Origin: Phallusia mammillata | Lineage: Eukaryota | DNA length: 64,000 nt | Assembly: GCA_965637545.1 (NCBI GenBank) | Contig: OZ281495.1 | Span: 14,136,001 to 14,200,000 of the forward strand | Direction of reading: 5' to 3' | Translations under genes and position numbers: made by a program | Notes under the pieces: model-generated | What the model saw: only the letters and a program-made list of their open reading frames with translations | Databases searched by the model: none | Told to the model about the DNA's origin: nothing | Shown: positions 38,251-59,299 of the stretch, piece by piece | How the letters are laid out: the number at the start of each line of letters is the position of its first letter | Position numbering within the stretch: position 1 is the first letter of the stretch

Positions 38251-41080
38251 CTAGGTGGAAGAAGTTTTAGCGTTTTTTCGGTGTCTGCTTTTGCTTTGTA
38301 AAGAAACGGACAATGCTGGATTTAAAACATCTGAAGTTTTTCCGCATGTAAGGGAATTTAACAGCTGCTTCAAACTCGAACGAAATTCTTCATCTCGTAC
38401 GCTGTATACAAGAACGTTCACAAAGCTGCGAGGAAAACAACGAAATAGGCATGGAAAAATAGTTTATAAACAGCGTCAGTGTTTTTAAATTTCAACATAT
38501 CGACAAAGTATTTTTATTTGACGTCAACCGTGAACGTTTGTTTTGTGTTTTGATTTACCTGTTGGACATGCTGAGGTAGACACAGATAAGATAGGGAAGG
38601 GAAATATTGTTGCAATCCAAGTACTTGACGTAGGAAAGAATAGCAACTACCACGATGGGAACTGCAATGTATAATAGCTTTAAACTGCTAGGTTTGTTTG
38701 TATGTTAATGTGTATCTTAATTTGTACTTAATTTATGAAACGTTTTTCTTACTTAAGGTTATTGTAAATCCGAGCTGCATAACAGCCACTGTTTTAAAAA
38801 TGTAAAACTCTTTTCTCAAATTATTTCCCGGTCGCAAGTCGCTGCCTGTAGATGATCTTCGTAACGCCGTGCCTTTGCGCAATTCATACCAACCATGCGA
38901 CAAAGTTGCAACAGAGATGCCAATCTAAAAAAATCAAAAACGTTTGTACACCTCAAACTTCAAAGCTTCACACAAACATAAGGGACTCAGAATGGTAGTT
39001 AAATAGTAAGTTAAAATATGTTGTTCAACTTCCAAAACACACGTGAGGCTATCATAAGAATTAAGTATCAAATACAACAACGATACACATATGTACTAAT
39101 TCATAGTGTACAGTTAACAAGGTGTTCCAATTTCACTACAATTCTTGACCACGTACACTTTGTTTCAACTCATAAACAGCATAAAAATTGAAACTAACCA
39201 TTAACAGGTAGGGCAGGACCGTGGTCACAAGCACAAGGATACCGGCAACGATTCGCGGCCACTGGTTTGGCTCTGGAGCGTCCACCACAGCAATTGAGAA
39301 TATGAACGCTGTATGGTAGTAGGTAAACACCAAAGCGTTGGGAAACCAAACTGAAATACAGACAGTCATAATGCTTTTGAACTTTTGGTTGACAGAAAGT
39401 TTTGGCTAAAAATCGTTTGATTTGTCAGATACGTTGTTGGTCACAGAAGATTTTTGTCCATGGCAGAAGTGATTTCATATTATGACACTTAGTACTAATA
39501 AGATACCTACGCAATGTATCCTTAATGATGGCCTAATTGACCACTATCACGTGGTTTCGATGTCAAGAGAAAATGCAGCACAAACATGGCCCAATTTTCC
39601 ATGACATTACAGTAATCGAATTACATTCAAAAAGGCCTTTTAGCTTACTTACATATGTCAAGTATGTACAAGAAATCAAACAGTTCAACAAAAATTTGCA
39701 GTTATTATGTTTCTTTGTTTGCCATCTACCCACTTTCTGGTCAACCGTTACTGTATTGGCAACTAAGTGCTTCAGGTCACTAATGGTTTAATCCGGTCCT
39801 GACCTATGGAGTTAAATGTATCGCAATCTTTACTTACGAGGCACGGTTGTCGTGGCAAATGAGCAGATCCACACACACGCTAGACTGGCCCAAAGTCGTC
39901 CTGATTTTTGCAGCATATAACGAAACGGCCACCTGATGGCGTAAAGGCGCTGGAGGGCGAGGAGCACCAGGTGGTAGAGGGAGGCAGTAAAACTAACCAA
40001 GTAAAATATTCCGCCAATAGTCGCTTGTGTGGAGCCATGTAATTTCAGTTGGCGTTGCTCGATTACGTTAGCCGTTGAGTTGATCATCCATGAGAAATTA
40101 AAGATGGTCACGAACAAGATTTGGATTCCTGTACACAAAACTAAATAGGAAGAAAGGTTTCATTCTTAACATGCTGGTCCACATTAAACTAATACACCAA
40201 AGAGATAAGTTTTATTAGATGTTTCGCCATGCATCTTTTAAAATCGGCCGTCAATGAAAAGGGAACAAGCTGTTGGCAAACATAAATCTGCACCGATTAG
40301 AAGGACGTGGAAGTGGCAATGGCTTTGCGGACAGATAACGGTTGGACGACAAGGCTTACAGTAGGTTGCCATGCAGACCGAAACGCTAGATGCAGTGGGT
40401 ACCTTTTCTTTTTTCTCAGTGCAGTTTCGAGTACATGATGCAGTTTAAACCAATGTACTAACGTTGATATTTGTACTCTACAATGTTTATGAAACGTTGC
40501 ATTCCTACTTCTGGCTTAATGCAACTCGACATAGCATTTAAACTTGGATAAGCTATAACGTCGGTTTGACTATGCAAATTTTGCAAAATAAAACGGTATA
40601 TAAGATAAGATATATTTTAATACCTGTAAGTAAATCAGCAACCGCCAGAGAACACTTGATACGGTAACAAAATTTGGGTTTCGTCGTCTTCAAGGCGCTA
40701 TAAATTACCAATAAGTTGCCGGATACAATCAGAAGACCCAACAAAACGGCAACCATTGCAAAGAAGCCCGCTCCTACCATGCTACATTGTGCACAATCTC
40801 GTAACGCAGTAGCATCGCACTCCGTTCTGGCAGCTTGAGTACAAAATCCTGGAAAACCACAAATGCTGAAATCTTGTGTTTCAGTGCTGAGGCGTTGAGG
40901 AAGTCTTAAATTCACAGTTGTTGAAACGTTTGATGCTAGTTTCTGATCAGATTTGTTTCCGATCAGTGTGTGTACTCCCGGCAAATCTCTTGTGTCTGCC
41001 GATAAAGACGGACTAGTTGTGCTCGTTTCTTGAAAATGAACAAACACAAATTGCCGAACAGTATCCGGATTCCTTGACAT
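38251..41080 (-). CDS. Orphan class-A (rhodopsin-like) GPCR1, 6 coding exons, short ectodomain
   Basis: Exons about 41080-40624, 40128-39838, 39350-39199, 38924-38753, 38661-38559, 38425-38251. TM1 GN, TM2 SLAVADLLTG, TM3 LQRLYAIRWP, TM4 VW, TM5 LP, TM6 QLGFTITLxP, TM7 SNSFVNVLVYS, helix 8 FRSSLKQLL. Start codon placement tentative. Confidence 0.88.
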
Positions 41081-43538
41081 CGTTGGAAATGCTTTTTTTC
41101 CGATCTTGAAAACTGTAGTAATGCTCACTTTAAAACATTGTATGATCCAATATGTTTTTTTCCTCTTTTACTAAACTACAACTAGCAACCAAACACGATT
41201 ACCCTGTTTTGAGTCTTTTTCAGGCAGAACAAACTATCTCTACAGTAAACGTGTCCAACTCCGTTTAAAAAGTTTGCATGTAAATCAGTCTTGCCACAGT
41301 TTAGGTAAAAGGTGACAAAAAAAGATCTTGTTTCTGTCTAATTTTCGTCCGGTACGCTTGAGGCCCAACCACAATATACGGAACAATGCCTAAGGCTACG
41401 TTAACATTCCTCTCAAAAACAAAACCCAGCATCAAGATAATGCGCAGTGTCGCCAACGCATTTCGAAGATGACTGAAACTAATGCAGTTGGTTTCTTTTT
41501 GGTTATGGTAAGCTGGATTTTAAAGTATCTAGCAACAGCTTAAAGCTGTCATAGTAAATTGGGAATACGCTGGCACAAAAAAAAGAACACTTTTAAAAGA
41601 TTAAATGAAGATTAGTTACTCAGGAGCGTACTCAATTGAAACCCTTTTTTCAACGACATGCAAAATTATTAATTAAATCGTGCAAAATGATATAAAGACA
41701 TACTCCAAGCCCTATGGGCATTGTTTCATCTACGCGAAAAAACGTCGCTGGCTGCTGACTTCTCCGAAGCCTCACGCACCGACTTAGTGATGGTTTCTCC
41801 TTCGTCGGGTGTCGGATGAAAACAATGCCCATAGCATAATATTGTGCTTTCGCAGCAATTATCAATTAGTGTCATCAGCATATGTATTCTTTTTCTTAGA
41901 AATGTCATGAAAAGTTAGTCTACACTGGAAGGAATAATCCCGTTTGTTTCCATAATTTTGAGTTCCTGTTCGTTAAAATATTACTCATACTCAAGATAAT
42001 AACTTAGATGGTCATTTTCCATGATCTGTTCAAATTATTTTTATACATCACTCTTCACGACGTGTTTGGCGTTGTTGATGTATTGTTGGCATTCGACACA
42101 TTTATCCGCCTGTCTGCAACCATTTCTAAAATTCGGACTAGTATTCTGTAAAGCAGTGATCAATGTGTCTTGATCTTAAGCAATTTATTCTGTTTATGGC
42201 GAGATTGGTTAAATTGTCATCTAATTGGTGCTTTGTAGTCTGTTGGTTGGCATACAAGTAGACGTAGCCTGTGGCCGACATCTTCCAAGCCTCGGGCTCC
42301 TCGATTATTTGGTTATGTGATTGCCTCATTTCAAAACCGAAAATCTTATGAAATGTTTTGAAGCCGATTGTGATTACCTACCCAGAGTACACTAGGTGGT
42401 TGATGCAATACCTATTGTTTATTGTGCTTTCGTTCAATTTAAATTTACGTTGTCTATGTTTTAATATGAGATTGTTCGGGAAAATAGTGGTGTGTTTTAG
42501 GACATACGCATGGTTGCAACAAAGTGGTCTGACCATGAAAATAACGATCATTACGATAACAGCTAATGGTGTTTTCGTTTTTTAGCCAATTACGTTTAGA
42601 GTCCGCGGGTCAATAGGTGACTGTGTGTGTCCGTTACATGTTAATTGAGAGGTTGCCAGCCGATTTGCAAAAGTAGTTAAAAAAGGAAGTTAGTCAGTAA
42701 ACAGCAACTGTCAGTGTCGATAGACATCGGAACACGAAATAATTAAAACTTAGACAACTCAGTTATTAGCGGTTGCAGAGTTGTAACCATGCCTAAATTC
42801 TCGACTCTAACCCGGTTCGAACCCGATTTAAGAGTTAAATCCAAATTAGATTTAAAGGTTGTTGGAAGGGTGGCAAAAAATGATGCTGAGTGTTAAGTCA
42901 GGCCCGAATCAAACCCGTTTTATTAAACCTCAAGCCCGAACTCGACCCGAAAAGCCCGGCCTGACTTACAGCTGTGAGCGACAAACGTTTAGTCATTCTC
43001 ATTTGCCGTTTCTCCCTCACAAGTATGATTACTGATGACTAAACGGGAATCTCAATGAGCTATCATGTGATAAGAGAATGCGACTTGGGTACGAAAACGT
43101 CGAAACTTGGGATTAGAGAAGGAATCTATTGAACTTGTTCTGTGCCCGCTTGCTTTTTTAGGTCTAGCAGCTTTAAGGAGCAAAGTGAATATATGGGGTC
43201 AAGAAAAGAATATTCAGAAATAATCAGAATGTTACTTAGGATAAAGGCGTAAAAAGACTCTTTAGGTTCAATTTATTGTTTTAAAACTCGCTTGCATAGA
43301 TTGAAAAGTTAGAAGTTGTCGGTTGCAGCATTCAGAGATAAATAAATACAGTAACTTTGTGGCTATTTTAGTATAGAATGTAGAGTTATACTTACGCGAG
43401 CTTTTCCGTACGTTATAGGGTTGAACCAGCTGTAGTTGGGTGTGATGCTCTTCGTCTTGTTTGACTAAGGCAAATTAATATATTGTGTCATTTTATTTGT
43501 AAAGATTTAGAAAATAAAAGTGTCATACAGAAGTGACT

Positions 43539-46500
43539 ATGTCCGGGGAAAGTAGCATGAAAACCGTCTTGGAAACTGTGACAATATCTGACATTTTATT
43601 GCCAACTGCAACCTCAGAAGATTTGGTAAATTTAACAAGTTCTTCAATTATTGATTCGGAACTTCCATTAACAATTCATGAAGTAACATACGTTCAACCC
43701 GAAACTCACAAGTTCATATTTCCAGTCGTAGCCAAGGCACATCCAGTGCCAAGAACATTTTCAGATGATTTTTTAACTACCTCGTCTTCTGGATCTGGGT
43801 TTACACTAAGCTATACTCACGACAAATTGCTTTCTGGATCTGGACTTCCTCAATACCTTTTACAAACTAGACATGGAATAGATTTTGAACCCCCACCAGA
43901 AGACTTTCAAGCGATACCGTTTTCAGGATCAGGATCCGGTTCAGAGGATCTAGTCTTAAGTGAAACACTAAGTGTTCCCATGGAAACGAGTTTCCATTTT
44001 CAACAAATTTTCCATTTTCAACAACCTCAAACTGCACAGTTTGAAACGGATTCATTTATGCCTTCCCACGTAATACAAGACCGCCAACCAATGCTGGCAC
44101 CCGTTCAGTTTCCTTTCCAACCTATTCAGTCATTCAGTACGGAATCATTTGAGGCCCTTTCTCCTTCATTCATTGGAGAGAATGAGTTATTGTTTCAACT
44201 TCCAGTCCAAGAACCGTCGCCCATAGATTTAACCCCTTACTTGCATCGCATCAATGCTAGTGAACTGCTGCATAGTTACGGTGGAGAACTTGTTAATGAT
44301 AACACAACATTAGGACAATTTCCAACCGCTTTCTACGATCCAACTACCAACACCTTGGGTTCAACTTTAAGAAACGCGTCTAGGCTTTGCGGATTTCCAG
44401 CATTTTGTTCTGTTGAAGCACATAAAACATGTGCAGGAACGGTTTTATCAAATTGTGATGAGTGCAGTATGTCCGGAGCAGCCTTGTTTGCTTCAGTCGC
44501 AATTTTTCTGGGAGTTCTAATATTGCTGGGAAACGCAATTGTGATTCGGAGTGCGTTGACAAAAAACAAGAAAGACAAAGATTTCTTTTCTAAAATCAAA
44601 TGTTCTTTGGCATTGGCAGATATGCTTACTGGTAAGTAAAGTTTGCTTGTTCTCCGCTCAATACCCATTGCCTAAAACAAATACTATTGACAGAAGTATA
44701 ACAAGAAAAGACTAAAAAAGTTTAAAATTAGCACTATTCCATTCATGTTCTAATTTTTCCAAGGTATTGAAATCTTGTGCGTGATCATGTACAACTTTAG
44801 CTGGGCGGTCAATTCAACAGCGAAAGAGATTGATCATCGACAGTTGCAGTTAAGGGGATCCACCCAGGCCGTCGTAGGTGGAATATTTTATTTGCTTGGG
44901 TTCACGTCATCTCTCTATCATCTCGTCTTGCTTGGCGGACAACGCTTGTACGCTATCTGGCGGCCAGTTAAATACAAGCTTCAGCCCACAAGGGTTGTCT
45001 ACATAGGACTTGCTGCTGTCTGGGCGTTCGCTTTGGTTACAGCAACAATTCCACGTAAGCAATTAAATGAAAACAAAAATCAAGGTTTTCAAATTACATG
45101 GACATTTTTTTATTTTTTACAGTACCTTTCGATATAGATTGTCAATAGTAACTAATTTTTCGTTTACTGCCTTGTAATGATATACTAACTTACCTTAATT
45201 TTTTTAACGTTCTTTGCTCACACCTTACCAGAAGCAACAAAATCATAACGTTTTCTGATAGATGTATAAAATATGCTAAAAAGAGGGGCAGACTATCAGG
45301 ATCAGTGTTACCTTGTATTTACGAAACAGAAATATTCATTTCGTCTACTTAGAAGGCATCGTCAGTTTCCGTCTTTTTCTTATAAGTTATGTTTGTTTGA
45401 TAGATAATAATCTTTCTTTCTACAATTAACTGACAATGTGACAATTAAAACAAGGTTCCAAATAAGATGGCGCTTGCCTTTACTGAAACTGAGTTGCATG
45501 TATTTCTTTACAGTTTGGATTCCTGACGTTTTTACATTTTCCTACATTCACACAAATTTTATTTATTACGTCGCTATTTCCGATATCGAACCAACACCTA
45601 AACGATTTGCCGAAGCAATGGCGATTCCTGTAGTTACAATCCTTGTTCCTTTTATTTTTATGGTAAGTGGCAAGAATCTCCTATTGTCCTATTATAAAAA
45701 TAGTTCACCAAGTATGCGTGATAAGTGTCGGTATTTATACCGGCTTTGTTTTGTTTTTCTTCTTACACAGTGACTTTCCTTTTCTCTTTAAGAGCCTATC
45801 TTAAGCACGGTTCAAACTCATTTGAAACCCTGCACGGCCGATGAGAAAATGGATTGTCCAAACGAATTCTTTTTTATTTATCTTTTTGTTTATTAATCTC
45901 TCCGGCTTTTTTGTTCTACATCAAGCTCATGTCCCTATGGGTGACATTATTAATTCAAGTTGAACTTTGGTGTCACAGACTTTTTTCACCGGAGTCACCG
46001 CTTTTCTTGCAAAAGGTAGAATTCGCCAAAGTCGCCGCTTGCAAGGAAATCAGGGAAGGCTAAGGAACAACAACACTGAAACCGATCTTTTCAAAACTGT
46101 CGCGTGCATGCAAATTGGATTTACAGTCACATTGAGTGAGTATAAACAAATCACAAAGCCACAATGGATAAGATTAAAGTAGACAGTATTTCACCAATGA
46201 AAACGATCTGTTGTTCTATACGGAATTTGTTTTTGTGGCCCTTTTCGATCCAATCTGTTTCCTTCAGGCACAAATTGTATCAGAGTGAAACGATAATCAG
46301 GTTTATATTAATTAACTGAATTTTGGTACTTTTTCTCTAGTTCCAGTGCTGGTTGCGACTTTACTGTCCTACACTGATAGATTGACTTGTGATAATGTTT
46401 CCCTACCTTATCTCATCTGCTTTTATATAAGCATGTCCAACAGGTAACATTTTGTTGTCCAAAAAAAAATATATTTACCAAACCGTGTGGTTGAGTTGTA

Positions 46501-47018
46501 ATAATGATGAATATATCCCATGTTTACGTTGTCCGCCTAAAAGTAAGCAAAATGGCATGCATTAAAATAAATTGCCATAATTTAAATATAATTGAACGAG
46601 TAAACAAACAAGATAACTTGAACCGAAAGATTCTCACTTTTACGTGGCGTCGCAGTTACACTTGCGTCGCCTTTACGGTCTAATTTTTGAAATTCGTTTA
46701 CCCCGAAGCTGTTTATTTTTAAATCAGCATTGCTACGTTCAACGAATGTCGTTAAAACTGATCTATTGTGTTTTGGATAAATTTTTGATTGTGTCCACAT
46801 TTCTAAACAACTGTGGAAAATCATTCCTAAACATTGTTGTAATTTGTTGTTTTAGCTTAGTCAATGTTGTGGTCTACAGTGCAAGGGACGCGGGATTTCG
46901 ATCCACTCTCCGCGAAATGTTTTGCATCAAATTGCGGTTATCATCAAAATCAAGCAGAACGCAAACTACCAGGGTGTGTCGTCAGAAAGAAAGTGGAAAA
47001 ACAACTTTACCAGTATAA
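43539..47018 (+). CDS. Orphan class-A GPCR2 with ~310-aa Ser/Thr/Pro-rich ectodomain
   Basis: Exons 43539-44631, 44764-45054, 45514-45662, 45979-46135, 46341-46443, 46856-47018. Same intron positions and motifs as GPCR1; start MSGESS matches MSGK starts of GPCR3/4. Confidence 0.92.
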
Positions 47019-48119: not shown

Positions 48120-51100
48120 ATGTCCGGAAAAAGTGGTATTGAAGCAGATGGAGGAAATTTCTCATCATTGGACGCAACAAGAACCTCAAAAACGTTGCTC
48201 AGTTCAACACTTTCTACAAACAATAAATTGGATCTTTTACCCATAATTCATGATATCACACTTCCCCAAACAAAAACGTATGGAAATCCATATCAAGCAC
48301 CACCGGTTATGGGCTCTGAACCACCTAAGGAATATATGCAAACTAATAGGTTTTCTGGTTCATCAAATAATCAAGATGATTTTGCTGCAACTTCGTTTTC
48401 CGGTTCTGGATTTTCCGGTTTTGGGTTTTCCGGATCTGGGTCTGGTCATTCTTCAGAGATCATTCAAACAAGCAGCTTTTCGGGATCTGGAAAATCACCA
48501 GACACATTAACATGGATACCTCATTTTGAATCAGCATCTGGTTCTGGATTTATTTCATATAGCGAAAACTATGTTCCGTTTCCAACATGGACGTACGTTT
48601 ATATTAAACGTACTACACCAAAACGACTTCAAAACGTCATACAAGACCGGAAGCCAATTTTACCCACTATGTTGTATTATCGTCCAAAGTTATTGGCGCG
48701 ACTACCTTCAAAAGTACTTCACTTTTCGCCGCAAGAATCAGTGCCTATATATTTAGACCCGGACTTGGGCAACACCACCGCTACTGATATTCATGACAAC
48801 AATTTTAATGAGCTCGACAATGTTAACACAAGTTTAGCAAAAATTTTAACCCCTTCTTATAATCCAACTGGAACCATGATACTGGATTCGACTTTAAAGA
48901 ACTCGTCCGAGCTTTGCGGATTTCCAGGATTTTGTTATGTTGAAGCACAGAAAACATGTGCAGGAACGCTTTTATCGCATTGTGATGAGTGTAGTATGGC
49001 CGGAGCAGCTTTGTTTGCTTTAGTCGCAATTATCCTGGGAGTTCTAATATTGCTAGGAAACGCAATTGTGATTCGAAGTGCGTTAAAAACAAGCAAGAAA
49101 GGAAAAGATTTCTTTTCCAAGATTAAATGCTCTTTGGCATTGGCAGATATGCTTACTGGTGAGTACTCCTAAGTAATGGTTTTTTTATTTCGCTTTATAT
49201 CCAATACATAAAACATTACTAAAAGTAGTGTAGTTCATCACGCAAAATATAGACAAACATTGGTTTTCAAATTTGGACCATTGTACAGACGGGCAGCACT
49301 ATTGATGCACCAAATTTGCTGCTTTGTAAACAACAGATCATATCTATTTAATTTTTAAGGCATCGAGATCTTGTGCGTGGCCATGTATAACTTTAGCTGG
49401 ACGATCAATTCAACAGCGAAAGAGATTGATCATCGGCAGTTGCAGTTCAGGGGATCCACCAGGGCCGTTGTCGGTGGAATTTTTTATTTGCTTGGGTTCA
49501 CGTCATCTCTCTATCATCTCGTGTTTCTTGGCGGACAACGCTTGTACGCCATCTGGCGGCCAGTTAAATACAAGCTTCAGCCCACAAGGGTTGTCTACAT
49601 AGGACTTGCTGCTGTCTGGGCTTTCGCATTGGGTATAGCAACCATACCGCGTAAGTGTTTCACTGTCAAAAGAGTTTGAAACTGGTTTTGCGCTATTCAT
49701 AGTTTTGAAAGAGAAAGTACGTACTTTTATTATATTGTTCGGCAATAAGCCAACCTTATTTTAAATGTCTTTACATTGAATTAGTAGTGACCGCTATTTC
49801 TTTTCGATTTAGCTGTTTCCGGCTTGATGAAAAAGTTTTCCGGCAAACGCCATTTTTGGCAACTAAACCAAACTAAACTAAACTTTTTTCTTTGCAGTTT
49901 GGATTCCCGACGTTTTCACATTCTCTTATATTCACACAATTTTTCTCTTTGCGGTCGCCATTTCCGACATCCAACCAACACCTAAAAGATTTGCCGAAGC
50001 AATGGCAATCCCTGTGGTAACAATCCTTGCTCCGTTTATTTTTATGGTAAGTCTTTCTTTCTTGTATCATTATCTTATCATGCATGATGCACATGTGTTT
50101 ACGGAGACCATTAGAAACTGAAATGCTTCAAATAGTCGAAAAATTTCACTAAAAAAATTAATAGATTGAAGTGCTTTACTTAGTACTTAGTACACAAAGG
50201 CTACATAAACATAGATCAGTCGTAAATACCTAACACTTGAGTTAAAAACGCCTATTTCACAAGAACGAAGAAAAGTACTCTTGCGTTTCAGACTATTCTG
50301 ACTGGATTCACAGCCGTTCTTGCAAAAAGACAAATTCGAAAAAGACGCAATCTTCAAGAAAATCTTGGAAGGTTACAGAACAGCAACGCTGAAATGAATC
50401 TTTTCAGAACTGTCGCGTACATGCAGATCGGATTTACAGTCACATTAGGTGAGCGAAAACTAGAGAAACTGGTGTAGTACCTCAAGACATAAGACGAAAG
50501 AAATCAAAAATGCCATTTATAACAAAATACGAGTGGCACTGCACTGCTAGATTATTTAAGATTAAACGCAATTCAGTAAACCAATTTAGTGATATTAGGG
50601 GTGTTTGTAGGAGTATCATCAATCTAATGCAGGGGTTCCCAACCTTTTTACGATCTATTACCACTTGGACGCTCTGTACTGCCCCGCGTACCGAACTTGA
50701 TCGAGTCATATTTTCGTCAGAAGAAGAATATTGGCCTACTAAAATAACACTAAAGCACCACAACTAAATTTAATGAGATTTTTGTTTACTGTCCACCAAT
50801 TAGTCGATGCGCGGTGCAAATTTGCTAACAGCGCTTCGAAAGTCATTTCCGGGCGCACCTATAGTTTTTGGTACTCCCGTATCACCTGAAAAACATTTGC
50901 GTATCACTGATGGTACGCGTTCCACAGGTTGGGAACCCCTGAACTAATAAAAGGGTAAATATGAGTGTTTTTTCTTGTGATAAAATGTGCATATAGTCAT
51001 CAGATTTGTGCTATTTTAATGAAATATGCTACATACATTGCAGTTCCGGTGCTGGTTCCGACTGTGCTGAGCTACACCTATGGATTGACTTGTGATAACG

Positions 51101-51619
51101 TCTCTCTGCCATTCCTTATTTGCTTTTACATGAGCATGTCCAACAGGTAACGATAACCTAATGTGTAACCTAAACAACCTTTATTAAAAACCTGTGCAAT
51201 ATTCTAAAATGAATTAACATTACTATGATCTTGTTTGCTTATATGATGTTGATATGGTTCACTTTATCCATGTAATGCAAGAAACAAAAATAGCTTAACA
51301 AAAGTTTAAGATGAGTCGAAGCTAATTGAATTTGATAGGTTTTTAAACTCCAATCAGGGTTTTATGATGTGTCTGAAATTGCCACACAGTAATAGAAGGA
51401 ACTTTGGTTCTGAAACCAAACCCTAGTTTCTAAAAATGTTTTTTTTTTCTTCTTAGTTTGGTTAACGTGGTGGTCTACAGTGTAAGGGATGCGGGTTTTC
51501 GATCTACTATTCGCGAAATGTTTTGTTTCAAATTGCGGTTGCCATCACGATCGACCAAGTCGCAAACTACCAGACTCACTCACCAGAAGGAAAGTGAAAG
51601 ACCAACTTCACCAGTTTAA
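48120..51619 (+). CDS. Orphan class-A GPCR3 with FSGSG-repeat ectodomain
   Basis: Exons 48120-49158, 49360-49650, 49898-50046, 50292-50448, 51044-51146, 51457-51619; open frame across all junctions. Confidence 0.92.
48396..48440 (+). repeat. Coding 15-bp tandem repeat x3 (F-S-G-S/F-G)
   Basis: ttttccggttctgga ttttccggttttggg ttttccggatctggg. Confidence 0.9.
50630..50941. mobile_element. Shorter (312 bp), inverted copy of the 37100-37702 MITE family in GPCR3 intron 4
   Basis: Perfect TIR caggggttcccaacct / aggttgggaacccctg; degraded TSD atctaatg / aactaata; paralogous GPCR4 intron has a single atctaata at ~57044 with no insert. Confidence 0.88.
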
Positions 51620-52252
51620 ACATTACCCAACATAAGTTCTCATGAAACATTTCTTTTGTTTTGTTACGCATTTTGACAGGGTATATATTGTACTTTTACT
51701 CGCTTTTTTTTGTGACCTTCGACGACACTTTGATTTAGGGTAGTTGTTCACTACCTGGTGTTAACGGTACCCCCATGGTCTGTGGAGCCTTCAGGAATAC
51801 GTGAACGCGAAAACTGTGAAATATTGTGAAACGTCTGAATGGGGTGAAATACACGTATAGGGTTCAACAGATGTAATGCTTATAGAAAGGGTCAGTAACT
51901 ATTCTAAAAGGCTAAGAAATCCTGATTTAGAGCGAGTATTTGTTGTTTTACTGTTGTCAACTTACATTTTGATAAATGTTGTTTATTGAGTCGACAACAC
52001 TAAAAACACGGATTCTTAACACCTAAAATGTCGTTTTATAACACGCTAGAGTACGATAAATTGAATGAATCAAAAACACAATTGCAGCTCAGTTGGTATG
52101 AAGCCAGCCTGGATTCGCACGTAACAAACCTTTTACTCTCGTAAGCAAGAAGCAAAAAAACAAAAATAAATGTCAAACCTTGCACCAATGTAGTGCTGCA
52201 CATCTCCATTGATGTACAAATTTGATATTAAATCATCTTTGTAATTTCGAAG

Positions 52253-53552
52253 GCATTGAGAGCTTGTGCGTGGCAATGTACAACTTTAGCTGGATGGGCA
52301 ATTTAACAGCGGACTAAATTCATCGGCAGTTGCAGTTAAGGGAGTCCACCCGGGACGACGTGGGAGAAATTTTTGTTTGCTTAGGTTCACGTCATCTTTC
52401 TATCATCTCGTTTTTATTGCCGGACATAGCTTGTACGCCATCTGGCGACCAGTTAAATACAAGCTTCAGCCCACAAGGGTTGTCTACATAGGACTTGCTG
52501 CCGTATGGACAATCGACTTTATTACAGCAGTCAGCAATCCTTTCTAAGAATTCTGTAGACCAATCTTTCGTTCACTATCTTGTAACGATGCACAAACTGT
52601 TTTTCTACGTGGTTTGCTCATTCCCTACCAAAAAATACAAAATCATAATGTTTTCTGGTCAATATACAGAATATACTCGGCAGAAGAGCGCCAGTGTAAT
52701 TATTTATTTACGAAACAAAAGTATGAGTGATTATAAACCAAGCACAAAACCACAATGGATTAGTTAAAGCAGACAGTAAAACCACATATCGTAAATACAC
52801 ATAAGTGCATTACTCATAATCGTGTTGTGCTGGCTTACATAGAATCCTAGTCATTATTAATGCAGGAAAACAATTTACTAAATCACATTCGTAAATTTGA
52901 TGGCTAAAAAAATATAAAATATGTTGTGCTATGCGGAATTTTCTGTGGCTCTTTTTGATTCTCATCTATTTTCTTCACGCACAACTCGTATTAGAGTGCA
53001 CGATCATCATGTCTATACTATTTTACTAAAGTTTGTTACTTTTTCTCCAGTTCCGGTGCTGGTTGCGACTTTACTGACAACGTCCGTCTAATAAAGATAT
53101 CCACAAAACAGTGTGTTTGAGTTGTACTAATGATGATTACATCCCGTGTTTACGCTGTCCGCGTAAAAAAGTAAAAATAAATTGCCATCATCCAAATATA
53201 AATGCACGAGTAATACACAAACAAGATAACTAACTACAAGTCTTTCACTTTTTACGTGACGTCGCATCGACGCAATGGTCTAATTTTCGGAATACGTTTA
53301 CCCTAATCTGTTTATTTTGGAATCAGCATTGAAGTGTAATACTGTGAAATCATCTTATTTCTAAACATTGCTGTACGTTTTTGTCTCAGCTTGGTTAAGG
53401 TTGTGGTCTACAGTGTCAGGGACGCGGATTTTCGATCTAATCTCCGCGAAATGTTTTGCATCAAATTGCGGTTATCATCAACATCAAGCACAACGCAAAG
53501 TACCAGGGTGTGTGATAAGAAGGAAAGTGGAAAAACAACTTCACTAGTATAA
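52253..53552 (+). pseudogene. GPCR pseudogene relic (exon 2, part of exon 5, exon 6; exons 1, 3 and most of 4 missing)
   Basis: 52253-~52520 is exon 2 with TAA at 52315 and indels; 52720-52780 and 52920-53330 match GPCR2 introns 4-5; 53051-53076 is truncated exon 5; 53390-53552 matches GPCR2 exon 6. Confidence 0.88.
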
Positions 53553-54613: not shown

Positions 54614-57600
54614 ATGTCCGGAAAAAATAGTATTGGAACAGATCTGGAAACTTCCACGGGGTTTGACGCAACAAGAACCTCCATAACGTTGCTCACTTCA
54701 ACATCTTCCACAATGATTGAATTGGATATTTCACCCACAATTCATGATATCACAGTTCCACAAACAAAAACGTATGGGAATCTATATCAATCACCATTGG
54801 TTATGGGCTCTGGACAATTTAAGGAATACGTGCAAACTGATGAATTCTCTGGTCCTCCAATTAATCAAGATGATTTTGCTGCAACTTCGTTTACCGGTTC
54901 TGGATTTTCCGGTTCTGGATTTTCCGGTTCTGGGTTTTCCGGATTTGGGTCTGGTCATTCTTCAGAGTTAAATCAAACCATCAGTTTTTCGGGATCTGGA
55001 AATTCACAGAACAAATCAACATGGATACCTCATTTTGAATCAGCATCCGGTTCAGGAGATATTTTATATAACGAAACCTACTTTCCGAAAAAAACACGGA
55101 CAAACACATATAAAATCAAAATCGGATTTTCGAATAATCCAATACAAGACCGGATGCCAATTTTGTACACGTCACTGACACACGTTATTAAGACCGAAGT
55201 ATTTTATTTTGTGCCCCAAGAATCAATGCCCATATCATTAGACCCGGACTTAAATTTAACCGTTCCTTACGATCCAACTGGTACCATGATACTAGATACG
55301 ATGTTAAAGAACTCGTCTAAGCTTTGCGGATTTCCAGGATTTTGTTCTGTTGAAGCACAGAAAACATGTGCAGAGACAGTTTTATCACATTGTGATGAAT
55401 GTAGTATGGCCGGAGCAGCCTTGTTTGCTTCAGTCGCAATTATCCTGGCAGTTCTAATACTGCTGGGAAACGCAATTGTGATTCGAAGTGCGTTGAAGAG
55501 AAAGGGAAAAGATTTCTTTTTAAAGATTAAATTTTCTTTGGCATTGGCAGATATGCTTACTGGTGAGTACTCCTTAGTAATTGTTCTTTTGTTTTGCTTC
55601 ATATCCAATAACTAAAAAATCACTGAAATGAGTGTAGTTCATCACAAAACATGTACCTTCAAAAGCAAAATAATGACAATGCTTAGGTTTTCAAATTTGA
55701 ACCATTGTATACAGAAGGGTAACGCTATTGATGTACCAAATTTAGGGCATTGAACACAACAGATCATCATTTATTTAATTTTTAAGGCATCGAGATTTTG
55801 TGCGTGGCCATGTACAACTTTAGCTGGACGATCAATTCAACAGCGAAAGAGATTGATTATCGGCAGTTGCAGTTCAGGGGATCCACCCGGTCTATTGTCG
55901 GTGGAATTTTTTATTTGCTTGGGTTTACGTCATCTCTCTATCATCTCGTGTTTCTTGGCGGACAACGCTTGTACGCTGTCTGGCGGCCAGTTAAATACAA
56001 GCTTCAGCCCACAAGGGTTGTCTACATAGGACTTGCTGCTGTCTGGGCTTTCGCTTTAGTTACCGCAACCATACCGCGTAAGTGTTTTACCGTCAATAAA
56101 ACTCGAAACAGGTTTTGCATTATTCAGAGTTTCGCCAGGTAAAAAAAAACATACATTTGGAATCCCGTTTCTCGCCAATGTCGACCTTATGGTTTGTTAG
56201 TCTTTACAATAAACCTTTACTATAGTGCCCTCTACTTTTGTGCCATCTACATAATTTAAAATTGATCAACTTTTTCCGGCTTGATGAGAAACTGGTAAAG
56301 CTGCAAATTTTAGCAACTAAAACAAACGTTTGTTTGCAGTTTGGTTTCCTGACGTTTTTACATTCTCCTACATTCATACAATCTTTCTTTTTGCTGTCGC
56401 TATTACCGACATCCAACCAACACCTAAAAGATTTGCCGAAGCAATGGCAATCCCTGTGGTAACAATCCTTGTTCCTTTCATTTTTATGGTAAGCCGCATT
56501 ATTTTCTTACTTCTAATTATGCTCGCAGCAATTGTTTTGAGTCCATGAGAAACTCGTATATTGCTCCATATAGTCGAAAAATTACGGTCAAAATTAACAT
56601 AATTGATCGGACAGTTACAAGTTGCGAAGTTAAAAATACGTGTTCAACAAACTCAACAAAAAGTTTATCAAAGGTAACGACAATGTTTTTATGCTGTGCG
56701 AATCAGACTGTTCTCACCGGATTCACGGCTTTTCTTGCAAGAAGACAAATTCGAAAACGACGCCTTTTGCAAGAAAACCTGGGAAGAGCGGGACGGTTTC
56801 AGAATAACAACGCCGAAATAAATCTTTTCAAAACTGTGGCGTACATGCAGATCGGATTTACAGTAACATTAGGTGAGTAAAAATATAGAAACAACTGCAG
56901 AAGTACCCATCAAAACATTATCCGGGATAAATCAAAAATACCATTTAGAACAATATGCCAGTCGTACTGCATTGCTAGATTATATTTAAGATTAAAGTCA
57001 TGGTAATTCAGTAAACCAATTTAGTGGTATTTGGGGTATTTAACAATCTAATAAAAGGTAAATATATGTGTTACAAAAATTTTGCATCGTTTCATTATCA
57101 CCTTGTTTCACATTAGTCACCTATGTCTTGTAGTCCTTATATCAGTGGTGGGCAAACTACGGCCCGCGGGCCGCATGCGGCCCGGCAAAGGAGTTCATGC
57201 GGCCCGCCAAATGTTTCCGAGTAACGCTGAATAGTACTATGAGCACAGGCGCAGAGTTTTAAAAATACCGGGGGGTGCGACTTGCCGATACCAATACCAT
57301 GTGCAGTATCTGTACCCGTACGATACTTTGGAACTAAACACAGATACTTTTCACGTGCTTTAGCCTGCCACGTTATTATGCAAATCGTCACTTGACACAA
57401 TTTCTTCGTTCGATGAAAGTAAAAGCGATTCACGTTTTCAAATACAGCCCACTTTGCACTGGTGACGCCCAAACTTTGGCACAAGGACTTTATCAACAAA
57501 AAACGTGGTTCAGCCTTTGTTGCAACAAACGCTTGTTTTTTTGAAACAATTACAATTGTAGCTTTTCAACCACTGTTTGTACAATCATGAACAAACGTAT

Positions 57601-59177
57601 TTGCATAAAGCTGAAAATATACTATGTAATAATTTTGCGCAGGGGTGCACAACCTGCGGCCGCAATCTATTAATATTTTGATTTTCAAACTGCTAAAACA
57701 GATTTCGTGGGACTGGAAAAAAGATTACCAGTCTAGTAACCATATGCGCCAGGCTTTTTATGTGCAAACAATGCGAAAAGAACGGGCACTGCAATCGTCA
57801 CAATACAGTTTTTGACGTCATAAACAGTTAGCTCCGTTCAGCTAAACTTATGCACAAGTTAGAAATTGTTAATCAGAGCATTTTAGGCGACTTTAAATGG
57901 TATATATATGATACAAACCTTATTTTTTACATCAGTTGTTTTAAAACAAAACAACAAGCAAGCAATTGGCGGCCGTTGGTGAAATACCATGCGGCCCGAT
58001 AAGATTATAAACTTTTGAATGCGGCCCTTGCACTGAAAAGTTTGCCCACCCCTGCCTTATATGATCTTTAATTTACTAAGTTTGTTTGTCGTAAGTTGTT
58101 TCCTATGTGTGCATATAGGCCCAAAACGTGTTTATCTTAATTTCACGATGTGGATTTTATGTATTTCACGTTGATCCCTATTCACATTTTTTGTTACGTT
58201 CACGTTTGTTTTTAACTGCTTTAATCCCCGGCACACTTTGCGCTCATCTATCCTTGCGTTTCGCAGCATTCCAAGTACAATTTCAGGTGTAACCATCCTC
58301 GTTAGGGCGATGATAATTGACAGTGGGTTTCTACCATGTGACTTGTGAGTTTCCTTGTTTCTTTATTATTTCTGTCGCGAGCTTTTTTCGTGTGTTTCAA
58401 GCTCTTTTGCGGACCACGTAAGGTTGTGAGGAGTTATTCCCCTGCTGTTTATGTTTTGAAATTTGTGATGCGCAGTGACCTTGCCAATATCGTACAGTTT
58501 TATATACTGTTTTTAAATAAAGACAGTAGTGCTCGAACGCGTCTAAACTATACTAGCCGTTACTGCTGCGTTTAAAGGCTTTTGGCAACCATTAAAGTAA
58601 GCGTCAAACAAGTTTTTCTTTCGTCTTGTGATGAAATGTTCATGATTAACAGATTTGTGCTGTTTTACTGAAATATTGCTACATGCTTTGCAGTTCCGGT
58701 GCTGGTTGCGACTGTGCTGAGCTACACGTATGAATTGACTTGTGATAACATCTCTCTGCCATATCTCATTTGCTTTTACATGAGCATGTCAAACAGGTAA
58801 CGGTAACCTAACGTGTATCCCTAACACAACAACCCAAAACGTAGTAAATAAAAATAACTAAAACAAAGTTTTGAATGGGATAAAGCTAATTGAATTGAGA
58901 AATATTAAATAAAATCAGGGTTTAATGACGTGTCTGAACTTGACACACAGTTATAGAAGGAACTTTGGTCCTAAAACCAAGCCCTTCTCAACTTATCTTT
59001 TTTTATCTTAGCTTGGTTAACGTGGTGGTCTACAGTGCAAGAGACGCGAGGTTTCGATCTACTCTCCGCGAAATGTTTTGTTTCAAATTGCGGTTGCCAT
59101 CGCAGAAGAAGAACAAGTCGCAAACTACCAGACTCTCTCATCAGAAGGAAAGTGAAAGAACAACTTCAACAGTTTAA
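54614..59177 (+). CDS. Orphan class-A GPCR4 with FSGSG-repeat ectodomain
   Basis: Exons 54614-55562, 55787-56077, 56340-56488, 56707-56872, 58694-58796, 59012-59177; closest to GPCR3. Confidence 0.92.
54890..54949 (+). repeat. Coding 15-bp tandem repeat x4 (F-S/T-G-S/F-G)
   Basis: tttaccggttctgga ttttccggttctgga ttttccggttctggg ttttccggatttggg. Confidence 0.9.
57143..58054. mobile_element. hAT-type non-autonomous element (912 bp) in GPCR4 intron 4
   Basis: TIRs cagtggtgggcaaact / agtttgcccacccctg (1 mismatch); perfect 8-bp TSD ccttatat; ends resemble the 31317-31793 element; an internal TIR-like caggggtgcacaacct at 57640; absent from GPCR3 intron 4. Confidence 0.92.
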
Positions 59178-59299
59178 ATTTTCCCAATGATAGTTCACAT
59201 CAAACATTTGTTTTGTTTCGTAACTGCATTTAGACAGGCTGTATATTGCAATTTTACTTGCTTCTCATTAAGCAAGTGACAAAGACCTTCAACGACACC

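Follow-up and report, generated by a model that had tools for sequence, protein, structure and literature searches.

The window, by which we mean the whole 64 kb stretch of Phallusia mammillata DNA analysed here, contains four intact six-exon genes, G1 to G4, predicted to encode class A GPCRs, and one pseudogene remnant of the same family (Table 1). In brief, exon 1 of G2 encodes an N-terminal tail, a cysteine module, TM1 and the start of TM2, exon 2 encodes TM2-TM4 and exon 3 encodes ECL2-TM5. G3 and G4 have the same six-exon plan as G2. The window genes were compared exon by exon, and full-length database homologs were used in place of spliced window proteins.

Table 1. Genes, cysteine modules and ECL3 cysteine codons in the window (e, exon; C1-C5, module cysteines)
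Feature	Position	Strand	Details
Gene G1	38359..41128	-	e1 ~41128-40622, e2 40129-39842, e3 39354-39196, e4 ~38822-38754, e5 38662-38561, e6 38451-38359; ends approximate
Gene G2	43539..47018	+	six exons, approximate limits; e1 43539-44633, e2 44763-45050, e3 45498-45665, e4 ~45979-46130, e5 46316-46441, e6 ~46782-47015
Gene G3	48120..51620	+	e1 to 49160, e2 49359-49646, e3 49885-50049, e4 50277-50429, e5 51019-51144, e6 51452-51616; 3' end approximate
Pseudogene remnant, same family	52252..53540	+	exon-2-like piece (stop and frameshift), exon-5- and exon-6-like pieces; without exon 1 or module
Gene G4	54614..59180	+	e1 to 55564, e2 55786-56073, e3 56333-56491, e4 56701-56853, e5 58672-58794, e6 58992-59165; 3' end approximate
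Five-cysteine module, divergent G1	40784..40861	-	
Five-cysteine module, G2	44388..44465	+	C1 44388-90, C2 44406-08, C3 44430-32, C4 44454-56, C5 44463-65
Five-cysteine module, G3	48915..48992	+	
Five-cysteine module, G4	55325..55402	+	
ECL3 Cys codon, G1	38612..38614	-	LDCNNIS; inside exon 5 (~38662-38561)
ECL3 Cys codon, G2	46388..46390	+	LTCDNVS, N-x-S sequon next; inside exon 5 (~46316-46441)
ECL3 Cys codon, G3	51091..51093	+	LTCDNVS; inside exon 5 (~51019-51144)
ECL3 Cys codon, G4	58741..58743	+	LTCDNIS; inside exon 5 (~58672-58794)

In all four genes, one exon encodes both TM1 and the module, five cysteines (C1 to C5) with the spacing C-x5-C-x7-C-x7-C-x2-C, and the gap between module and TM1 is 2-3 residues (approximately three codons from C5 to the TM1 start in G2). 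A six-frame regular expression search of the whole window gave exactly four matches to this pattern, and all 20 cysteine codons were checked in the window sequence. Shuffling the window 200 times (mononucleotide) gave a mean of 0.005 matches, the four real copies being paralogs and hence non-independent. All four modules begin with C-G-F-P-x-F-C and end with C-S. Identity among G2-G4 is 81-88% in the module, 82-88% in TM1-TM2 and 28-56% in the N-terminal tail. The agreement of G2-G4 says little by itself, because these genes are 76-94% identical in their conserved exons. G1 is 48% identical to G2 from the module to TM2 and retains all five cysteines.

Each window gene has one cysteine in ECL3, within LTCDN in G2-G4 and LDCNN in G1. 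In the exon 2 and exon 3 translations of all four genes, the TM3 top and ECL2 are free of cysteine. The residues for the canonical Cys3.25-ECL2 disulfide are absent from the window genes; this feature is common and not obligatory in class A, where it occurs in approximately 88% of receptors (PMC7460885). Of 25 full-length family members, 24 lack the TM3-top cysteine, and no ECL2 cysteine is conserved among them. A preliminary description of the window had reported the module before TM1 in every paralog, G1 included, and a lone ECL3 cysteine with none at the start of TM3 or in ECL2. The pattern search, the codon check and the exon translations confirm both observations for all four genes, and the module coordinates given there were correct to within a few bases.

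The receptors are members of class A (rhodopsin-like GPCRs). Against Pfam 7tm_1 (gathering cut-off 30.5), full-length family members reach 57.8-70.1 bits; among single window exons, G1 exon 2 reaches 30.7 bits and G2 exon 2 reaches 23.6 bits. The class A seven-helix fold was recovered through generic class A matches in Foldseek (E 1e-9) and in VIA-align, where opioid, beta1, 5-HT and A2A receptors gave Z 24-26. Searched against the sequences of solved structures, a whole-length family profile gave beta2AR, A2A, D2, rhodopsin and CB1 as best matches (E 4e-22 to 1e-17). N1.50 (GN) and D2.50 (LAxAD) are kept; R3.50 is kept but in a Q-R-L motif, and the TM7 motif reads N-V-V-V-Y, with the proline lost.

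The module itself matched no catalogued domain. A profile of the 37-residue module alone had no significant match among PDB sequences (best E 0.17), and 62 module sequences had none in Pfam (best E 0.046, in three of the 62). The earlier impression that the module corresponds to no recognised domain thus held when a profile was built and searched. Pfam searches of window exon 1 and of ten family members found no LRR or LDLa, only Sushi repeats or nothing. Kinship with the LDLa-GPCRs was considered and rejected: the LDLa-bearing Ciona protein ci0100142353 (Kamesh supplement) lacks the five-cysteine module before TM1.

We searched a profile of the module plus TM1 exhaustively against 1.84 billion proteins, counting matches as cluster representatives at 50% identity. 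At E<=1e-3 the search returned 154 representatives, of which 85 pass E<=1e-10; those that are named all come from ascidians (Ciona, Clavelina, Phallusia or Styela). The five-cysteine-cap receptors are an orphan GPCR family, so far found only in sea squirts. All five cysteines are present in 120 of 150 representatives, which span several ascidian genera at 22-60% identity; C1, missing in approximately 13%, is the only variable one, the other four being nearly invariant. We define the family by C-x5-C-x7(10)-C-x7-C-x2-C located 2-3 residues before TM1, an ECL3 cysteine co-occurring with C1, and no TM3 or ECL2 cysteine; all four window genes show every one of these features. They match the module profile, of which they are themselves the source, at E 1e-48 to 1e-54, and a TM2-TM4 profile built from other species at E 5e-34 to 3e-38.

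Family members were recorded in the Ciona survey of Kamesh et al. 2008 (PMC2396169), where proteins such as ci0100154142 and ci0100142144, both with EST/cDNA support, were filed as unclassifiable 'Other Rhodopsins'. We assign ci0100154142 to the family since it contains LCGFPSFC...C...C. Neither the cysteine module, nor the ECL3 cysteine, nor the lack of the canonical bond is described in the survey, and the word 'disulfide' is absent from its main text (PMC2396169).

The ectodomain is variable. The window genes encode a long Ser-Gly-rich tail, and their conserved MSG start is not followed by an evident signal peptide; in the Clavelina members the ectodomain consists of as many as seven Sushi repeats in a row, with the module placed between these and TM1. 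We found no earlier description of a Sushi-repeat ectodomain joined by such a module to a class A core. A word-index search with exon 1 residues 270-368, covering 202-644-residue proteins that share exact words, gave no match, a blank of little weight beside the exhaustive profile search. Throughout the family, ICL1 after TM1 is strongly basic, and conserved N-glycosylation sequons lie within or next to the module, in ECL1 and directly after the ECL3 cysteine. The module therefore lies on the oxidising, extracellular side.

The variability of C1 allowed its presence to be compared with that of the ECL3 cysteine, in the 43 genes where both sites were readable. The C1-less loci L002/L003, L004/L005, L007, L010 and L012 were left out, as the contig ended too early or the ECL3 exon was unrecognisable. 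The ECL3 cysteine is present in 28 of 29 C1-bearing genes and absent from all 14 C1-less genes, so that 42 of 43 are concordant (Fisher p 2e-10, uncorrected). The single exception is the divergent Styela protein P0142, with a C1-like cysteine and no ECL3 cysteine. Where the cysteines are lost, diverse residues replace them. By parsimony, coincident changes at the two sites number five on a 7TM tree and eight on an exon-2 tree. It should be noted that an independent-pairs test is underpowered and cannot reach significance, because only two pairs lie on well-supported branches. This joint retention and loss points to a disulfide between C1 and the ECL3 cysteine. The preliminary description had clamped the ECL3 cysteine to the module as a sixth cysteine without naming its partner; the co-variation suggests C1.

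A clue to the inner bonds comes from two genes. In P0019, C3 and C4 are replaced together with the spacing kept and the other two of C2-C5 retained, and P0121 retains C1, C2 and one late cysteine. The joint loss of C3 and C4 in these two genes suggests a C3-C4 and C2-C5 pairing, which we put forward as tentative and somewhat less likely to be right than wrong. Two AlphaFold models of family members gave pLDDT 96-98 for the module and 92-97 for ECL3 (pTM 0.84), with the approximately 30-residue ECL2 modelled as a two-stranded beta-hairpin. On the C1-ECL3 bond the models do not discriminate, because the C1-less control P0028 is equally confident in the segment before C2 (pLDDT 90, versus 80 in the C1-bearing model).

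We propose that the five cysteines form a small, disulfide-stapled extracellular hairpin that would be part of the receptor core and end two residues before TM1. The most N-terminal hairpin cysteine, C1, would pair with the single ECL3 cysteine, and the remaining four would staple the hairpin internally, most likely as C2-C5 and C3-C4. The C1-ECL3 bond would close a covalent ring from TM1 via the cap and ECL3 to TM7, anchor the variable ectodomain by its base at the corner of TM1 and TM7, and substitute for the canonical TM3-ECL2 disulfide that is missing family-wide. We consider this architecture probable, at roughly 65%.

Co-variation shows partnership only and does not distinguish intrachain from interchain bonds, so the same counts would be expected if C1 and the ECL3 cysteine were partners in trans, linking two receptors or a receptor and an accessory protein. 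We regard such a link as unlikely. TM1 and TM7 are adjacent in every class A fold, which brings a segment six residues ahead of the TM1-proximal hairpin within reach of ECL3 of its own chain. The pre-TM1 segment and ECL3 are positioned confidently in both AlphaFold monomer models, and the known N-terminus-ECL3 bonds are intramolecular (MC3R, PMC10390531).

The module could also be a degenerate hinge of LGRs and glycoprotein-hormone receptors (Cys-box 3 plus the internal agonist segment), which would make the family a stripped-down LGR. In these receptors too, a cysteine-bearing juxtamembrane segment lies between a large ectodomain and TM1, and several family members are auto-named 'relaxin receptor 2' in databases. 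FSHR and TSHR topped the structural re-alignment (309 aligned residues, Z 26.1 and 25.8), which extends through the pre-TM1 segment, but these Z values are tied with those of aminergic receptors. The best solved-structure matches of the family profile, listed above, are not LGRs, the profile search of PDB sequences found no similarity of the module to the LGR hinge, and neither LRR nor LDLa domains are present. LGRs differ further in that their hinge cysteines form bonds with the LRR cap rather than with ECL3, and in keeping the TM3-ECL2 bond; the Ciona survey, likewise, put members under 'Other Rhodopsins' and not in LGR-like groups. An LGR origin of the module is, in our judgement, improbable.

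We reject, as similarly improbable, the reading of C2-C5 as a zinc-knuckle-like metal site or a redox-active CxxC instead of two structural disulfides. C4-x2-C5 is indeed a CxxC, a set of four invariant cysteines in 20 residues is reminiscent of small zinc sites, and one window copy matches PHD_2, at noise level (E 0.13). However, the module is extracellular, with an N-x-T sequon conserved between C3 and C4, no Pfam zinc finger was matched significantly, and the loss of exactly two cysteines in P0019 at unchanged spacing fits the loss of one bond of a ladder better than damage to a four-ligand metal site. Finally, mere retention of a functionless pattern in recent duplicates, which the high identity of G2-G4 would allow, can be dismissed given the five cysteines of the divergent G1 and of most representatives at 22-60% identity, and a module conserved like the helices beside a tail that falls to 28%.

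The proposed stapled cap has partial parallels among known receptors, among them the melanocortin receptors. MC3R and, according to the same paper, MC1R and MC2R have no TM3-ECL2 bond and a disulfide from the N-terminus to ECL3 (C35-C276 in MC3R; PMC10390531). These receptors share with the ascidian family class A membership, the absence of cysteines at 3.25 and in ECL2, and a pre-TM1 cysteine paired to ECL3, a pairing that is predicted in the ascidian proteins. For its TM1-TM2 part, the window profile also has MC4R and MC5R as best solved-structure sequence matches, weakly (E 0.004), but none of the top 60 matches of the whole-length profile is a melanocortin receptor. They have a three-residue ECL2, a second disulfide within ECL3 and no four-cysteine hairpin, whereas the family has an ECL2 of approximately 30 residues and a single ECL3 cysteine. 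Melanocortin receptors are reported absent from Ciona (Kamesh et al., PMC2396169).

Other receptor groups share some of these features. Chemokine, P2Y and angiotensin-type receptors have a second extracellular bond from the pre-TM1 segment to ECL3/TM7; they differ in keeping the canonical TM3-ECL2 bond and in having a single N-terminal cysteine and no stapled hairpin. Lipid-type receptors (S1P1, LPA and CB1; the MECA cluster) lack the TM3-ECL2 bond and carry an ordered N-terminal cap beside TM1, but this cap is helical and without the five-cysteine pattern, and the extra disulfides are within loops. CB1 is just one of many equal matches of the family profile. The absence of the bond from S1P1R is documented (PMC7460885). 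The preliminary description held that the combination and spacing in the window match no recognised domain. This was too broad for the N-terminus-ECL3 bond without a TM3-ECL2 bond, already present in MC1R, MC2R and MC3R (PMC10390531), and holds for the hairpin: the new part is the four-cysteine hairpin fused to TM1, with its spacing, which has no known counterpart.

With regard to function, it is conceivable, if rather doubtful, that the cap is a rigid, glycosylated and stapled foot serving as an adapter for interchangeable ectodomains, whose state would be passed to the helices through the C1-ECL3 latch in a hinge-like manner. The cap might have a role in ligand access, for instance as the lid suggested in the preliminary description, or in coupling ectodomain and helices, and subfamilies that have lost both C1 and the ECL3 cysteine would be 'unlatched' and gated in another way. 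In the window genes these ectodomains are proteoglycan-like Ser-Gly tails; in Clavelina they are rows of as many as seven Sushi repeats.

Few features of GPCRs are as conserved as the TM3-ECL2 disulfide, and only a few groups are without it, each of which shows another way of holding the extracellular face together. The ascidian receptors, with at least 154 sequence clusters, form a large animal family that would have a different and apparently modular substitute. Natural 'knock-outs' of one of its predicted bonds have arisen several times within the family, and the structural role of an N-terminus-ECL3 bond can therefore be tested by comparing paralogs. The module itself offers a compact, putatively disulfide-rich motif for structural study.

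The window is AT-rich (GC 0.35-0.40) and animal-like in composition. Its segment between 38.3 and 59.2 kb contains four genes, G1 to G4, all intact and all from one class A GPCR family, together with a pseudogene remnant of that family. G1 is located on the minus strand and G2-G4 on the plus strand, and all four follow a common six-exon plan. In brief, exon 1 spans a long N-terminal tail, the cysteine module, TM1 and ICL1 and runs into TM2; TM2-TM4 are on exon 2, ECL2-TM5 on exon 3, and ICL3, TM6, ECL3, TM7 and helix 8 on exons 4-6. In the remnant, the exon-2-like piece is interrupted by an in-frame stop and a frameshift; exon-5-like and exon-6-like pieces follow, and there is no exon 1. The tails of G2-G4 all open with M-S-G, which is conserved, show no obvious signal peptide and contain many Ser-Gly repeats and N-x-S/T sequons. 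Two class A microswitches are changed family-wide: Q-R-L replaces D/ERY (E-R-x in some relatives), and the NPxxY position reads N-V-V-V-Y, with no proline.

Features of the receptor cluster and of related contigs (window positions unless a contig is given)
Feature	Location	Strand	Remarks
G1 gene	38359-41128	-	
G2 gene	43539-47018	+	
G1 module, C-x5-C-x7-C-x7-C-x2-C	40861-40784	-	
G2 module, same pattern	44388-44465	+	
G3 module, same pattern	48915-48992	+	
G4 module, same pattern	55325-55402	+	
G2 N-terminal tail	43539-44380	+	before module
G3 N-terminal tail	48120-48910	+	before module
G4 N-terminal tail	54614-55320	+	before module
Pseudogene remnant	52252-53540	+	between G3 and G4
ECL1 sequon motif, N-F-S-W-x-x-N-S-T	e.g. 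44790-44815		exon 2, all four genes
Q-R-L	e.g. 44950-44965		exon 2
C-x-N-x-S at ECL3 cysteine	e.g. 46388-46402		exon 5, all four genes
N-V-V-V-Y	e.g. 46880-46895		exon 6
Tandem cluster, six family genes	L001:532-21184		Clavelina lepadiformis CAUIVY010000002.1
hAT-type transposase dimerisation domain	L004:11946-12437		adjoins family gene

The preliminary description placed a five-cysteine module before TM1 in every paralog, divergent G1 included, and this was confirmed: a six-frame translation holds exactly four matches to the pattern, against 0.005 expected by chance from shuffled window sequence. All four modules share C-G-F-P-x-F-C and C-S, and end two to three residues before TM1. The module is conserved in a helix-like manner, with 81-88% identity among G2-G4, falling to 28-56% in the adjoining, fast diverging tail. 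Module and TM1 are always found within one reading-frame block, indicating that the module behaves like an integral piece of the seven-helix unit rather than a shuffled domain. It also holds for all four genes, as first described, that ECL3 carries a single cysteine, in LTCDN or LDCNN, and that there is none at the top of TM3 or in ECL2. An N-x-S sequon comes next after the ECL3 cysteine.

A module-to-TM2 profile built from the four genes was run exhaustively against 1.84 billion cluster representatives. At E<=1e-3 it matched 154 proteins, mostly exon-1 fragments from raw assemblies, and 85 of them reach E<=1e-10. Every named relative is ascidian: Ciona intestinalis, C. savignyi, Clavelina lepadiformis, Phallusia mammillata (three proteins) and one divergent protein of Styela clava. 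One metagenome contig with a family gene, L004, is evidently ascidian host DNA. The automatic names conflict (relaxin receptor 2, TAAR-like, adenosine A3-like, apelin receptor-like and octopamine receptor-like), and thus recognise no real orthology to any named vertebrate receptor. With a full-length profile, E falls from 8e-65 for the family to 2e-29 at the next match, and among solved structures many aminergic, opsin, cannabinoid and peptide receptors match about equally.

A Pfam search with exon 1 of the window genes gave no match. For 62 module sequences no Pfam family was found (best E 0.046), and the corresponding module-only profile gave nothing significant against PDB sequences (best E 0.17). 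Ten full-length members matched only 7tm_1, besides N-terminal Sushi repeats in several Clavelina proteins. In C. lepadiformis P0043, P0106, P0107, P0128, P0129 and P0118, one to seven Sushi (CCP) repeats precede the same five-cysteine module. We found no published description of Sushi repeats joined to such a module and a class A receptor, and literature searches for ascidian class A families that carry Sushi repeats or a cysteine-rich juxtamembrane module gave no result. In a 2008 survey of Ciona GPCRs, family members ci0100154142 and ci0100142144 are placed under 'Other Rhodopsins' and are backed by ESTs and cDNAs; the module is left undescribed (PMC2396169).

The segment after TM1 is strongly basic. 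Conserved N-glycosylation sequons occur in ECL1 and immediately behind the ECL3 cysteine, and most members have a further one between C3 and C4 of the five module cysteines, C1-C5. Together these place the module on the lumenal or cell-exterior side, where cysteines form disulfides. The sequon within the module reads C3-x-N-x-T and is not present in the four window genes.

All five cysteines are present in 120 of 150 representatives (roughly 22-60% identity). C2, C3, C4 and C5 are each absent from at most three sequences, whereas C1 alone is absent in about 20 (13%) once two sequences in which it has only moved are not counted. That only C1 varies while the other four stay fixed suggests mutual pairing within C2-C5 and a partner for C1 outside this set. 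In Clavelina P0019, C3 and C4 are both replaced by Leu with the spacing intact, while C1, C2, C5 and the ECL3 cysteine are kept; P0121 retains C1, C2 and one late cysteine, more likely C5 from the TM1 register. Both would fit a ladder whose tip is the C3-C4 pair and whose base is C2-C5, although two cases are a thin basis. Single inner cysteines are lost in P0112 (C4 to R) and P0133 (C2 to Y), near-identical to intact P0080 and P0064 respectively; these may be pseudogenes of recent origin or reflect sequencing errors. C1 of P0105 and P0131 has moved, giving C-x7-C, and both have an extra cysteine between C2 and C3.

The presence of C1 and of the ECL3 cysteine was compared among full-length proteins, the four window genes and genes rebuilt exon by exon from contigs fetched for C1-less fragments (L001, with five genes of a Clavelina tandem cluster, L006, L008, L009 and L011). 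The ECL3 cysteine is present in 28 of 29 C1-bearing genes and absent in 14 of 14 C1-less genes (uncorrected Fisher p 2e-10). The sole exception is divergent Styela P0142, where the module spacing also differs (C-x5-C-x4-C-x10-C-x2-C); it has a cysteine near the top of TM3. The L001 cluster mixes genes having both cysteines with genes having neither, and one exon 1 in it is truncated. The replacing residues vary (F, R, T, N, P, D, S, W and A at C1; N, S, T, Y, K, R, W and G at ECL3), which argues for several separate events. Trees were inferred by maximum likelihood with the trait columns left out. On them, parsimony gave five changes per trait for the 7TM region (25 rows) and eight for exon 2 (41 rows), and the changes coincide except on the P0142 branch. 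Resolution of the trees is poor, with just two independent pairs on well-supported branches, so a formal sign test cannot reach significance. From this co-variation, the case for C1 and the ECL3 cysteine as putative bonded partners is good but not conclusive.

An AlphaFold2 model of Ciona P0005, from a 131-row alignment, has a mean pLDDT of 87.3 and a pTM of 0.84, with 96-98 for the module and 92-95 for ECL3. DSSP assigns isolated bridges to C2 and C5 and a short helix to the C2-C3 interval; it also gives a bridge from the C3-C4 loop to ECL1 and a beta-hairpin in ECL2. In a control model of the C1-less Phallusia paralog P0028, the module has the same secondary structure, and confidence before C2 is even higher. 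The hairpin fold is predicted regardless of the putative C1-ECL3 bond, but the models do not discriminate on the bond itself.

In the preliminary description, the combination of an N-terminus-ECL3 bond with no TM3-ECL2 bond, with its spacing, matched no recognised domain. The combination is not new, since MC3R lacks the TM3-ECL2 bond and has an N-terminus-ECL3 disulfide, C35-C276, as do MC1R and MC2R (PMC10390531); in MC4R this bond was proposed, but the crystal structure did not show it (PMC7460885). Unlike the ascidian family, melanocortin receptors have a three-residue ECL2, an intra-ECL3 bond and no four-cysteine hairpin, and the two are not specifically related. FSHR and TSHR head a structural re-alignment, being aligned through the segment before TM1, with scores tied with those of aminergic receptors; profile comparison with PDB sequences gave no support for kinship.

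The module is a real feature and sets apart a large class A subfamily that is so far known only from ascidians. The proposal that it is clamped to ECL3 is the best-supported explanation, to which we give a probability of about 0.65. C1 and the ECL3 cysteine are kept or lost jointly in all genes read at both sites, P0142 excepted.
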